A stretch of 64,000 nt of DNA from Macrostomum hystrix. Taxonomy: Eukaryota > Animalia > Platyhelminthes. The stretch is from positions 558,001 through 622,000 of the forward strand of contig CATNEN010000009.1 of NCBI GenBank assembly GCA_950097015.1. The letters are read 5' to 3'. A program made the translations under genes and the position numbers. Under the pieces are notes generated by a model. It saw only the letters and a program-made list of their open reading frames with translations. It was not told the origin of the DNA and ran no database searches. Shown piece after piece: positions 21,119 through 26,360 of this stretch (position 1 is the stretch's first letter; each line of letters opens with the position of its first letter).

Positions 21119-23819
21119 ATGGTGAGTGCGCACATCGGGCAGGCGGGTTGCCAGCTGGGCCACGCGGTGTGGGAGCTGTTCTGCTTGGAGCACGGCGTGC
21201 AGGCGGACGGCCAATTAGCCACTTCGTGTAATGCCTTCGCAAGGGATCCGGCTGAGTCCGTGTTCCAACGCAAAGGGAGCAGGTTCACACCGCGGGCGGT
21301 CATGTGCGACACGGACCCGATCGTCATTGACGAGGTGCGCAACGGCGCTTATAGGCAGCTGTTTGCAAGTGAATGCCTGATATCACACAAGGAGGGCGCC
21401 GCTAGCAACTTCGCTGTCGGGCATAACAACGTCGGCAGGGCGATTTTACCGAGCGTTTCTGATGCGATGCGGCATCAAGCTGAGGCCTGCGATTGCTTAG
21501 AAGGTATCGTTCTCTACCACTCCTATGGTGGCGGTACTGGCTCCGGCTTTACTCCGCTGCTCATGGAGAAACTGAGGGACGGCTATAGCAAGAAGACTCT
21601 GCTGCAGATGGCTGTCTATCCGTCGCCGAGGTGAGGCTTTTCCGAGTTTTTTGTTGTTCCTTTCGTTGTAATTACGGGTTCGCTCTGTTTACTCCTAACG
21701 CCCCAATCGACCCGTGGTGGCATAGCAAAGAGGAGAGAGCCCACGACTCCAATAAGAGGCGGTCGTTCTCATTATCCTCGTCGCCAGATAGACGAGTCGT
21801 CCTAGCCGATGTCGAGTGTACAGGCCTGCCAGTAGCCCCTGTTCATAGCCTCAGGCGGTCGTGAGGTTGTTTTGATGCTAGTATACGAATGGTTTATGCG
21901 TTTATTAGTTTCAGGAAACAGTCCTGCTGACAGCAAAGGAATCACTGACATTTATTGCTTTAACATACCAGAGACGGGCTGTACGTGGATTTTTGCCCTT
22001 CGGGAGACACCCGGATGACCACGAATGAAAGCATTCACGAGGCGATTCAGATTTTTACAACCTGTTTCTATCTATTGAATTTCTATCACAAGCTACAGTG
22101 GCAATGCGCCACTGAAAATAATCTTGACTCAATCCGATAATTATGATGTGACACAGACTCGCGACCGGAACAGTCGAGCCGTACAACACTGTGGCCTGCC
22201 TGCAGGCCTGCGAGCCACACTCGAGCAGCGTCATACTGCTGGACAACGAAGCCATGTACAGCATCATTCAGAAATACTTTAACAGCTCGATTGCATCCAG
22301 CAACTTCACGCTGGCAAATCGGCTGTGCGCACAGCTAATCAGCTCTCTGACTGCGGGCTTTCGCTTCAGCGGCGAGCAGAACGCCACACTGGCCGACATC
22401 GCCGTCAACCTCATCCCCTACCAGCGGCTCATCTACCTCTGCCCATCGTATGCTCCGTTGACGCAAAGCGGTCTCGTTGACAACAAACGAATGACAGCTC
22501 AGAGCCTGGTGAGCGGTACAGAATCTACTGCCGTGACAGCTGTGACTTTCCTCACCTGCTTATCAATAAATGGGGAGCCAATCAGATAAGCTAATGGGTT
22601 TCCAGGCTGTGCCTAGAAACTATTAACTTGACCTGGGACTGTCTGGCGAATGTGCAGCTGTTCCTGAGAAATATGCAGCTGTTCCTGAGAAATGTGCAGC
22701 TGTTCCTGCGAAATGTGCAGCTGTTCCTGCGAAATGTGCAGCTGTTCCTGCGAAATGTGCAGCTGTTCCTGCGAAATATGCAGCTGTTCCTGGGAAATTT
22801 AAGCTGTTCCTGAGAAATGTAAGCTGTTCCTGGGAAATGTAAGCTGTTCCTGGGAAATGTAAGCTGTTCCTGGGTAATGTAAGCTGTTCCTGGGAAATGT
22901 AAGCTGTTCCTGGGAAATATCCAGCTGTTCCTGGGAAATGTAAGCTGTTCCTGGGAAATGTAAGCTGTTCCTGGGAAATGTAAGCTGTTCCTGGGAAATG
23001 TAAGCTGTTCCTGGGAAATGTGCAGCTGTTCCTGGGAAATGTAAGCTGTTCCTGGGAAATGTAAGCTGTTCCTGGGAAATGTGCAGCTGTTCCTGGGAAA
23101 TGTAAGCTGTTCCTGGGAAATGTAAGCTGTTCCTGGGAAATATCCAGCTTTAAGTCGTACCTAAGGCTTAAAAAATTAAACGTGTAGATGAGGCTGCTAC
23201 TATACGTGTCCTGCCGCAAAATCCAAAAAGCAAAACTTCGATCTAAAGCTCAGTATCTGAATTAAGAGCGCCGCTATATACGAGTACTTCCACGCAGGTG
23301 TCCGAGGCCCTATCAGATGACAACCTGTTCGTCCGCGTGGCAGCCAAGAACAAGCCCATCTTTGCGGCCTGCATGATGTTCCGCGGCGCCATCAGCGTCT
23401 CGGATAGCAGGTCAGAGCTCGGCCGCGCCTGGCCGGACCTGCTCGGCAGGGTAAAGATCGCCCACAATAGCCAGCCGCCCACCCAGGTCCCTGGCACCGG
23501 CATCGGTGTCGGGCCCTCGGCGCTGGCTGTGCTCAGCAACACGCCTGCCGTGATAGGCAAGTTCCGCAACCTGGGCCGCAAGTTCGACTCCATGTTCAGC
23601 CAGGGCAGCTTCTTGGCCACCTACCTCGCAAACGGTTTCTCCTGCGACCAGTTTGTGAACGCCAGGGAGCACCTGAGCTCAATCGAGCAGGCCTACTTAG
23701 AGAGAGTTGACGACCCATCGGTCTACGACACCCCAACAGCCTCGCCTAAAACCTCGCCATCACAGGGTCAGCTCAAAATGAAGTTCGGCCGGACTTGCGG
23801 CCCGTGGCAGCACAAGTAA
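21119..23819 (+). CDS. Highly divergent alpha-type tubulin
   Basis: Exons 21119-21630, 22157-22508, 23298-23819 (phases 2 and 0 consistent). Motifs HIGQAG, WELFCLEHG, PRAV, VIDEVRNGAYRQLF, HSYGGGTGSG, VEPYN, LDNEA, NLIPY, KFDSMF align best to alpha-tubulin. A short upstream exon may exist (ATGGCG|GTAAG at 20789 is a candidate). Confidence 0.92.
22640..23150. repeat. 20/21-bp intronic minisatellite (GCTGTTCCTGGGAAATGTAA)n in tubulin intron 2
   Basis: Direct reading. 21-bp units come first and 20-bp units follow. Confidence 0.95.
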
Positions 23820-24197
23820 TGGCAGAGGCCTCACAAATGATCCACTTGGCGACTTATCGACTTTATGAGCGAAGGCAATGTCGGGGAAAATTTGTGTTTT
23901 AACAAGAGTTTTACTTTTAATGTGAAAAGAGGTGTTATGGGCGACTGAATGCGCGAAAATATACTTTGAGAACTAACTTTGCTTTGAATGCTTTCATTTG
24001 CCACTCTTTTTATCGAATTCCTAAATGTGTTATGAGTCTACTTATTTGCTTCTTTTGGGATTCTATAAAGACGTTGCCTGTCAAAAGCCTTGTCGAGACT
24101 CGTCGAGCTTATAACAATACAATTGCGGCAAAGGATTCCGACAGGTAAATGCAAGTCCGACGGGTAAATGAAACTCCGAATGGTAAATGTGACTCAC

Positions 24198-26360
24198 GTC
24201 TCTTTGTCGGCGACTGCGGATGGGCCGGCGGCCTGCCAAGTCGGCCTCCGCTGCGTCCGCGATCGACCACTCCTGAGTCTGTGGGGTGGTCGATGGTTGA
24301 ACAACTGCGCTTTTCAATGGGCTGACACTCTTTCCTAGTCAATCCCTTAATGAAAACCTATTGCTCCTATCTTCCAGCTATACCTGAGTCCTGGACACTG
24401 GCATCGATGTCGGGCCCTCGGCGCTGGCTGTGCTCTTGCATCCCCACCCTTCAGCCCGCATTGCCCTTGATTCCAGCATTACCATGATGAGCCATTTCTA
24501 CCCTCCAGCCTCCCATTTACCAGCATTATCATGGTGTGATGAGCCATTTCTACCCTCCAGCCTCCCATTTACCAGCATTATCATGGTGTGATGAGCCATT
24601 TCTACCCTCCAGCCTCCCATTTACCAGCATGGTGTGATGAGCCACTTCTACCCTCCAGCCTCACTCCATTTGAACACAATCGAGCTCACCAGGCCTGTCG
24701 CGAAAGAAGCCGTGAAACACAACAAAGTTGTTCATCTGCGGTATGCAGTCCTTCAAGCCGTAGTGCTTCTTTAGAAATCCAGCGAACTTCGGCGACGGCC
24801 TGTCAATGGCCAGGTGCACCGGCTCCACCTGCTCCTGCTGCAGCCGGAAAATGTTTTATTTTTTTTAATTCAGAATGGCCGAAAAGCACACTCGCGCACC
24901 TCAGCTCAATCGGGGTGAGTGGCAGAGCAGTCTAACGTGTTTGCCTCGCACACCAAGGTCCCTGAGCTCGAATCCGCGGCGGGGCCGCATTTATTTGAGG
25001 CGCAGCCGCGGAGAGAAGGCTTGGGAGCTTGTTGTGCAATTTACGACCTTGAGGGCCAACCTCCAAGGCACAGTGAGAGTATTCACAGCCGTAGGATGAG
25101 AAAGTCAGGACAGATGTGTGAGCAGTGACTGAGTACGGTATTTGTGTGTGCTTGTAGTCAGGAGTCAGCGAAATTGGCAGAATCGCCTTCTCGCTGACTG
25201 CGGGTCAAGTGCCAGCAAACGATGTGCCATGCCCGCAGCCCTCCAGCAAAATACTCGCATTATCACTTTTATTATACACAGAACAGGCTGCGGCTAGAAC
25301 TTACTTTTTCTTGTTTTAGTCGCTAATGACCCCAGCAATACAAACGTCACGAGTTACAAGCACTTCAACTGCCCTGACTTACTTGCAGCATGAATTCGAA
25401 CAGAATTTTTCCGTATCCATGGCGCTGCCGAGACTCGTGCACATAGAAGTCCAGGACGCACAGGGGCTCCAGCTCGTGCTGCTTGCCCAGCATGTCGTAG
25501 ACGAACAGCTTCTTGCGACCCATCTTCAGGATGCCCACCACTGCGCCCTCCATGCTGCGAATGTTGCAATGAGGAAAAGGGCCTTCGAACACTGCTTAAA
25601 TCCCAATGCTACGCGCCTGATAATCTGGACGCCCTCCAGGCTTGCACATTGGCATACTTATAATTAGGAATAAGCCCAAGTGACTCACTTGTTCGCGAAA
25701 GCATCTTTCAGGACATAGAGCCGGTGATCTGAGTACTGCAGGCGCTTGAAGCTTGTGATGGCATTTGGCAGCGATTGGGCCTTTAATGTGCGCGATCAGT
25801 TAAAGAGTCAGGTTTATTCCATATTTTAGCCATCTACTAATGTGTGTAGAATAGTTGACTTTTACTTACTTTACCAGAAGCGATTCCCATGTTATCAATG
25901 ATCTGCATGAGATTGTTTCGATTTGAATCATAGCTGCAAAGTCAAATAGTGCTTTTTATTTGCTTTGTGTTGTATTGTACCCCGAGAAAATATTTCAAAG
26001 CAGCGGCAAAATCGATAGATGACTAAGCTGCTAACATTTAATTAATAAAATTATATCTATCTAAAATATTTTATAGAGGCACTCCGGAATGGATGTTTAA
26101 ATTTATATGCATAAGTGATAAAACTGACAAAGAACTCCAGTTCGACTTTTTAGAGAATCTTTTCAATTAACAAGACTTTCATAAATGTGTTTTCACTTTC
26201 ACGAAAGACTTAAAAATATATACATGCCAAAGATTTTATCATGATTGTAGCGATTCATGCATTACCTGGAGCGCTGAAACTTTTGAAGATTGGTAAACGA
26301 ACTAGTAATAATAGTAATTTCATCAGGAAGTAATGGATTAACATTGAAAGAGAATTCCAT
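24198..26360 (-). CDS. ATAT1: Alpha-tubulin N-acetyltransferase (MEC-17/ATAT1)
   Basis: Phase-consistent exons 26360-26266 ([18 protein letters not shown]), 25933-25870 ([14 protein letters not shown]), 25780-25689 ([26 protein letters not shown]), 25554-25383 ([40 protein letters not shown]), 24837-24690 ([22 protein letters not shown]), 24334-24198. The terminal exon was not located. Confidence 0.95.
24474..24660. repeat. ~50-bp tandem repeat, ~3.5 copies, in ATAT1 intron 5
   Basis: Repeated CCAGCATTA(C/T)CATG..GATGAGCCATTTCTACCCTCCAGCCTCCCATTTA. Confidence 0.9.

Follow-up and report, generated by a model that had tools for sequence, protein, structure and literature searches.

Can an alpha-tubulin gene and the gene for an enzyme that acetylates alpha-tubulin lie together for a functional reason, and how are two such genes arranged when they do? 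The question is raised by a locus of the flatworm Macrostomum hystrix, located in a stretch of 64,000 nucleotides (nt) of contig CATNEN010000009.1 (assembly GCA_950097015.1, positions 558,001 to 622,000 of the forward strand). This stretch is referred to below as the window, and its first letter is position 1 in all coordinates. The window contains a divergent alpha-tubulin-like gene on the + strand and, on the − strand, a gene for ATAT1/MEC-17, the acetyltransferase of alpha-tubulin lysine 40 (K40). An initial annotation had described the two genes as converging tail to tail and had proposed a co-regulated or mutually antagonistic pair. The analysis revealed that the tubulin gene is instead nested, in antisense orientation, within intron 6 of ATAT1. 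We regard the nested layout as real and lineage-specific and the pairing as incidental, with a probability of about 0.72.

ATAT1 comprises 10 coding exons on the − strand, which run from 26360 to 18480 over a span of 7.9 kilobases (kb) and specify 423 residues. Exons 1 to 6 lie on one side of the tubulin gene and exons 7 to 10 on the other. The host intron (19499–24197, − strand, 4,699 nt), delimited by the exon model and by conserved splice sites and phases, accommodates the whole tubulin gene (20094–23819, opposite strand). The same layout is found in Macrostomum lignano, where the tubulin gene (10001–13742) lies entirely within an ATAT1 intron (8460–14008 of locus L001). The 3′ end of the guest is 378 nt from ATAT1 exon 6 in the window and 266 nt in M. 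lignano. Thus, the initial annotation was correct in placing less than 400 base pairs between the tubulin stop (23819) and an ATAT1 coding segment (24278–24198), but this segment, exon 6, is not the coding end of ATAT1. It terminates in a conserved GTGAGT donor, and four further coding exons (19498–18480) are found beyond the tubulin gene, so that the convergent arrangement does not hold. The two genes are probably separate transcription units, and the guest would be spliced independently of its host.

The complete catalytic domain that the initial annotation had recognized on the − strand, from the ATG at 26360, was confirmed by Pfam and PDB matches. Searches of both databases were run exon by exon, and joined translations were used only for pairwise alignment, for tree building and for estimating nonsynonymous (dN) and synonymous (dS) divergence. 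The open reading frame (ORF) 25365–25592, in the exon 4 region, matches Pfam Acetyltransf_16 at 6.6e-26 and PDB ATAT1 at 1e-18, and the ORF 24661–24828, in the exon 5 region, matches the same family at 4e-17 and PDB ATAT1 at 3e-16. Exon 1 (26266–26360), which carries the ATG, shows 85% amino acid identity to M. lignano by tblastx. Exon 2 (25870–25933) was drawn from the exon model and tblastx to M. lignano, and exon 3 (25689–25780) encodes the equivalents of the substrate-binding residues I64, R69 and H75 in the alignment to PDB ATAT1. Exon 4 (25383–25554) encodes K102, C120 and the Q-R-H-G-x-G acetyl-CoA motif, which includes R132. Exon 5 (24690–24837) encodes D157, R158, S160 and K162 and the end of the catalytic domain, shares 100% amino acid identity with M. 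lignano (tblastx) and ends in a phase 1 donor, GTGAGC.

Exon 6 (24198–24278) has a conserved acceptor, and its GTGAGT donor is also in phase 1. Beyond the tubulin gene, ATAT1 resumes with exon 7 (PPSATLGDRKSLLP; 19458–19498), which is 100% identical to M. lignano at the amino acid level, has a conserved AG and a conserved GTGAGT, and is in the phase that exon 6 requires. Exons 8 (19292–19374; exon model and tblastx to M. lignano) and 9 (19061–19173) correspond to a single exon in M. lignano. The last exon (18480–18862), which includes a (CAG)n poly-Q run detected by TRF, ends with RHYSHTRLW and a stop codon at 18480–18482. In the assembled 10-exon gene, all junctions are AG/GT, all phases are compatible and no internal stop is present.

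By sequence, the relationship of the window to M. lignano is that of a congener. The M. lignano genes were reached by a word search with the tubulin exon at 21119, which retrieved a fragmentary M. lignano protein (P0001) and, from it, the full ortholog, BOX15_Mlig020438g1 (P0039, 505 residues). The M. lignano ATAT1 is BOX15_Mlig002856g1 (P0159, 415 residues, Acetyltransf_16). In the assembly GCA_002269645.1 (locus L001; L002 is a mirror view of it), the ATAT1 gene (6576–16060) encloses the tubulin gene, which is on the opposite strand. Blastn and tblastx comparisons of the window with the M. lignano locus are colinear, in the order MFS sugar transporter, ATAT1 3′ exons, tubulin and ATAT1 5′ exons; the ATAT1 blocks include the stop at 18480, segments 19499–19452, 19380–19321 and 24279–24193, and the catalytic exons. 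Brute-force enumeration of splice combinations for M. lignano ATAT1 yielded thousands of solutions and was replaced by pairwise splice-site alignment. The splice sites homologous to those of the window yielded 415 codons in M. lignano, the product of which is identical to BOX15_Mlig002856g1. The GenBank annotation of M. lignano derives from RNA-seq-guided transcript assemblies (PMC5730564).

The initial annotation had held that absence of the linkage from congeners would argue for chance adjacency; the same pair, in the same arrangement, occurs in M. lignano, and the arrangement is older than the split between the two species. An additional M. lignano model of 758 residues (P0160) is a mis-prediction in which ATAT1 exons 3–6 run into the nested tubulin read in antisense. 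Its only use is as a second witness of the adjacency of the two genes in this species. Neither BOX15_Mlig020438g1 nor BOX15_Mlig002856g1 has an entry among the rows listed in the supplements of M. lignano papers, and a full-text literature search by M. lignano gene identifier returned nothing.

The far-side exons can be assigned to ATAT1 on the basis of two results. An oyster ATAT1 (P0311) aligns with the BOX15_Mlig002856g1 product over its full 415 residues and ends in RHYNHTRLW, the terminal HTRLW being common to the window, M. lignano and oyster proteins. Moreover, the tail exons show a dN/dS of 0.13 relative to M. lignano. Several mollusc ATAT1 proteins also cover 100% of the M. lignano query. 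Splicing of the host across the guest is consistent with the RNA-derived M. lignano model, the conserved sites and phases and the full-length oyster alignment. An exact-protein look-up of two oyster ATAT1 proteins returned no identical record.

Residues of the catalytic domain were read from ungapped alignments to the human and zebrafish ATAT1 PDB chains, and chain positions were converted to review numbering by an offset of 4, as applies to the human sequence. The catalytic residues D157 and C120 are kept, as are the acetyl-CoA contacts R132, S160 and K162 and the substrate contacts I64, R69, H75, K102 and R158. The list of catalytic, acetyl-CoA and substrate residues is that of PMC11039541. 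ATAT1 is under purifying selection; the catalytic domain differs from that of M. lignano with a dN of 0.030, a dS of 1.55 and a dN/dS of 0.02. By its domain and residues, the window protein is a putative alpha-tubulin K40 acetyltransferase. It resembles human ATAT1 (PDB 3VWD/4GS4) and Caenorhabditis elegans MEC-17 in its Acetyltransf_16 domain (PF05301), in the residues listed and in its long disordered C-terminal tail. In contrast to these, it has a tubulin gene inside intron 6.

The tubulin gene on the + strand was likewise recognized correctly at the outset, as evidenced by Pfam Tubulin and Tubulin_C matches and by top PDB matches that are all alpha-tubulins. Its exon 2 (21119–21630), in which an acceptor CAG abuts an in-frame ATG, ends in a phase 2 donor, GTGAGG, and encodes a GTPase domain with the GGGTGSG signature; the ORF 21119–21634 matches Pfam Tubulin (PF00091) at 3.3e-42 and PDB alpha-tubulins at 4e-52. 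Exon 3 (22157–22508) has an AG acceptor and a phase 0 GTGAGC donor and is 79% identical in amino acids to M. lignano (tblastx), and the ORF 22191–22589 matches PDB alpha-tubulin residues 178–278 at 7e-20. The last exon (23298–23819) carries the stop; eight residues are deleted in the S9 region of its product, and the tail is not acidic and ends in GPWQHK. Its ORF (23298–23819) shows a weak Pfam Tubulin_C match (1.6e-5) and matches PDB alpha-tubulin residues 300–435 at 2e-13. Together, the three large exons have AG acceptors and GTGAG donors and provide 461 codons without in-frame stops.

The ATG at 21119 had been taken as the start of the gene. The M. lignano codon homologous to it is not ATG, and the RNA-derived M. 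lignano model starts 800 base pairs upstream, at a mini-exon of four codons (MLGK) followed by GTGAGT. A likely counterpart in the window (20094–20105, + strand), inferred from M. lignano, consists of ATG and three codons (ATGGTGGGCCAG, MVGQ) followed by the donor GTGAGC; 15 of 18 nt match M. lignano, and the flanks are unrelated. The probable start of the gene is thus 20094, which gives a protein of about 465 residues.

The nested tubulin is only 37–40% identical to ordinary alpha-tubulins in pairwise alignments; for reference, the identity between a different M. lignano alpha-tubulin and one from a starfish is 76%. It is of the alpha class, as the listed top PDB matches of all three large exons are alpha chains. 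The M. hystrix and M. lignano orthologs are 78% identical, with a dN of 0.154, a dS of 0.913 and a dN/dS of 0.17, and the protein is a fast-evolving but constrained paralog, under purifying selection. A maximum-likelihood tree groups the nested tubulins of the two species on a very long branch that falls outside every alpha-tubulin sampled. The tree leaves their origin unplaced, and one row among the alpha sequences is named beta-tubulin. Other M. lignano alpha-tubulin genes are intronless, which makes a comparison of intron positions with the nested gene uninformative. An exact-protein look-up of the window tubulin exon ORF and of the M. lignano fragment P0001 returned no identical record.

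Like canonical alpha-tubulin (TUBA1B, PDB 3J8X chain A), the nested protein has an intact T1 and GGGTGSG and is colinear from H1 to H12; the Tubulin/FtsZ GTPase domain is present, and its GGGTGSG signature is the same in both species. It differs from TUBA1B in several respects. The protein begins with MVGQ-MVSAH, or with MVSAH, rather than with MREC (the M. lignano start is MLGK), and eight residues are deleted near S9. The C-terminal tail is not acidic: it is neutral to basic, lacks EEY and ends in KMKFGRTCGPWQHK. A Cys takes the place of K40 in a loop that is two residues shorter. The T7 loop (22371–22397) reads GEQNATLAD instead of GALNVDITE in the alignment to PDB alpha-tubulin, so that D251 is replaced by Thr and E254 by Asp, and the motif is identical in M. 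lignano. In alpha-tubulin, D251 and E254 of the T7 loop stimulate the adjacent beta subunit to hydrolyse its GTP. Given the known roles of both residues, a nested subunit carrying D251T and E254D would be expected to be a poor trigger of GTP hydrolysis in the lattice. The altered T7 loop and the missing MREC and acidic tail suggest that the protein has a specialised role in microtubules, probably a non-dynamic one, which does not depend on where the gene is located. With its T7 catalytic residues lost in both species, the tubulin itself is probably of greater interest than the nesting.

The initial annotation had noted a Cys at the K40 position of the tubulin and a luminal loop shorter by two residues. 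Phmmer alignment to PDB alpha-tubulin bore out both parts of that observation: DGQLATSC faces DGQMPSDK, with Cys (TGT, 21227–21229) at the K40 position, and two one-residue gaps account for the shortened luminal loop. No Lys occurs anywhere in the luminal H1–S2 loop of the M. hystrix protein, the first Lys of which comes after the loop, and K40 acetylation of this protein is therefore impossible. The description of the gene as a tubulin without K40 applies to M. hystrix and does not extend to the M. lignano ortholog. There, the loop reads DGRAGPWK, and the spacing from the conserved HIGQAG...DG block puts its Lys exactly where K40 would be. The lack of K40 is thus species-specific rather than a conserved property of the paralog. 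Within the N-terminal domain, conservation is lowest in this loop, the length and most residues of which differ between the orthologs.

Unusual loops are also found in other M. lignano alpha-tubulins (P0046, P0054 and the product of a 447-residue gene in locus L006), which have shortened, non-canonical loops with the Lys displaced by about two positions. Contig NIVC01000387.1 of M. lignano (L006, 12–7458) contains three clustered alpha-tubulin genes of 447, 368 and 485 residues, at least two of which are intronless. The H1–S2 loops of this cluster are shortened to DGMMLAGMSK or DGMMLAGREK instead of DGQMPSDK. Non-canonical K40 loops are thus common among Macrostomum alpha-tubulins. Since ATAT1 is strongly constrained and the nested tubulin has no loop Lys, the real substrates of the enzyme are probably other alpha-tubulins encoded elsewhere.

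ATAT1 loci of three other spiralians were compared: the annelid Owenia (L003), the brachiopod Lingula (L004) and the nemertean Tubulanus (L005). Neither gene calls nor tblastn revealed a tubulin in the ATAT1 gene or in its 10 kb flanks in any of them. Other flatworm ATAT1 loci were absent from the top 120 word-search matches.

Against this background, the linkage is conserved in a congener but is uninformative about function, because a nested guest stays linked to its host without selection and because the MFS transporter, too, is colinear at this locus. Most likely, a tubulin paralog landed in, or arose in, an ATAT1 intron and then stayed put, since any rearrangement that removed it would disrupt the host gene. 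The locus looks like an ordinary gene-within-gene accident rather than a proven functional pairing. A functional pairing is disfavoured by the Lys at the K40 position in M. lignano, by the odd loops of other M. lignano alpha-tubulins and by the tubulin-free ATAT1 loci of the three spiralians. The locus resembles nested opposite-strand gene pairs of other animals in that a complete guest, with its own exons and start, occupies a single host intron, in that the layout is kept between related species, and in that host and guest appear to be independently constrained. Unlike those pairs, host and guest here come from one biochemical pathway family, which is unusual for nested genes.

Other explanations either deny that there are two intact, nested genes or give their proximity a function. 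If the exons at 19498–18480 belonged to a different gene, the 415-residue M. lignano model would be chimeric, the end of ATAT1 would be close to 24198 and the two genes would lie tail to tail after all. The exon 6–7 junction in M. hystrix is indeed a predicted one, but the exon 6 donor, conserved in both species, needs a phase 1 acceptor, which exon 7 supplies in both, and the 415-residue protein aligns end to end with oyster ATAT1, down to the shared HTRLW, and is covered completely by mollusc ATAT1 proteins. The full-length oyster alignment led us to reject this reading, which we find scarcely credible. Just as hard to credit is the suggestion that the tubulin is a decaying duplicate or incipient pseudogene, the oddities of which reflect degeneration. 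Its identity of about 38% to canonical alpha-tubulin, its very long branch, the eight-residue deletion and the loss of K40, D251/E254, MREC and the acidic tail are what such decay might produce. However, the frame is intact and splice sites are canonical in two species separated by a dS of about 0.9, the dN/dS is 0.17, neither GGGTGSG nor the altered T7 loop differs between the species, and M. lignano has an RNA-derived gene model. This reading was rejected on account of the dN/dS and the intact frames.

An antagonistic switch, in which transcription of the guest collides with that of ATAT1 and silences it or forces termination after exon 6, is unlikely. Early termination would leave an isoform consisting of the catalytic domain only, and cells, for instance spermatids with stable arrays, would use either acetylation or the special isotype. 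The geometry suits such a switch, since the guest is on the opposite strand, wholly inside the host intron, with its 3′ end only a few hundred nucleotides from exon 6 in both species; the exons for the catalytic domain all precede the host intron, so that truncation would still leave an enzyme, and the altered T7 loop, identical in both species, suggests a selected non-dynamic isotype. Yet blastn between the species found no block of conserved non-coding sequence within the host intron, and the only extra block, a stray 54-nt copy of tubulin exon sequence in intron 5, is not positionally conserved. In its full form, the switch would itself be selected: transcription of a K40-less, GTPase-activation-deficient isotype through intron 6 would block or truncate ATAT1 transcription, giving hyperstable arrays without acetylation (for example, in the sperm cortex of Macrostomum) and the reverse elsewhere, a scenario we consider distinctly improbable. 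Slightly less plausible again is a co-regulated enzyme–substrate module, in which the nested tubulin is or was a dedicated substrate or partner of ATAT1, with shared chromatin and enhancers, and in which the Cys of M. hystrix is a recent loss. The Lys at the exact K40-equivalent position in M. lignano and the linkage in two species are what this would predict, but the surroundings of that Lys (GPWKACAR) bear no likeness to the conserved PSDKTIGG, and the divergence of the loop in length and sequence between the orthologs suggests weak constraint. Moreover, M. hystrix has no loop Lys and still keeps its ATAT1 catalytic domain at a dN/dS of 0.02, which implies that the essential substrate lies elsewhere, and the ATAT1 loci of the other three spiralians are free of tubulin. 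Of the initial proposal of a co-regulated or antagonistic pair, therefore, the linkage stands, as it is conserved in M. lignano, while the functional part is weakened by the Lys of the ortholog, the nesting, the outgroup loci and the odd loops elsewhere.

Several points weigh against regarding the pairing as incidental and the layout as settled. The incidental reading is an argument from parsimony, and, taken as one specified pair, an alpha-tubulin within the gene of an alpha-tubulin acetyltransferase has a low prior probability. Interference between the transcription of host and guest is a possible consequence of antisense nesting. The comparison covers two Macrostomum species and three outgroup spiralians, and a canonical K40 alpha-tubulin of Macrostomum was not found among the sequences retrieved. 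The use of exons 7–10 and of the mini-exon in M. hystrix is deduced from homology, from conserved splice sites and phases and from the M. lignano models. If the nesting were regulatory, the locus would be a rare case of a "tubulin code" hard-wired into genome architecture, in which a single locus would interlock a writer enzyme with an isotype beyond its reach. In either case, the gene models are corrected, ATAT1 by four more exons beyond the tubulin gene and the tubulin by its 5′ mini-exon. The question can be settled quickly in M. lignano, in which the two genes are now named and which is amenable to transgenesis and RNA interference.

Additional observations concern the surroundings of ATAT1. 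In Owenia, Lingula and Tubulanus, ATAT1 is arranged head to head with an MMR_HSR1-type GTPase gene, and a Cg6151-P family gene comes next in two of the three. The pairing of ATAT1 with the MMR_HSR1 GTPase is a conserved spiralian microsynteny. In the window, an AT-rich stretch and a long interspersed nuclear element (LINE) lie 5′ of ATAT1. The GTPase was not seen beside the window ATAT1 in a search that stopped at this LINE.

The ATAT1 tail varies between the two flatworms. The intron between exons 8 and 9 (19174–19291, 118 nt) would introduce an in-frame stop if retained, and the corresponding M. lignano sequence (L001, 7440–7635) is uninterrupted; the difference is an intron gain or loss between congeners. 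The poly-Q run of the last exon corresponds to a (CTG)19 repeat on the + strand (18711–18767), and in the M. lignano tail, poly-Q and poly-G runs are shorter and located elsewhere. A single chain of 753 residues from the representative library (P0158) combines three ATAT1 catalytic domains in tandem.

Repeats and a stray gene fragment are found in the introns. Much of the second long tubulin intron (intron 3, 22509–23297) is occupied by a 20-nt tandem repeat of about 24 copies (22649–23149; TRF). Its unit, AGCTGTTCCTGGGAAATGTA, includes a donor-like GTAAGC motif and a pyrimidine stretch, and on the − strand the array reads as a 198-residue repeat ORF, which is not a gene. A 52-nt tandem repeat of 3.5 copies (24485–24662; TRF) begins some 30 nt past the donor of ATAT1 exon 5, on its downstream side. 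The stray copy of part of the tubulin last exon (24382–24435, + strand, 54 nt) in ATAT1 intron 5 was identified by blastn, at 90% identity to the M. lignano tubulin exon, and by tblastx. It is not found at the equivalent position in M. lignano, and it is closer to the residues of M. lignano (D..D) than to those of the window's own exon (G..G).

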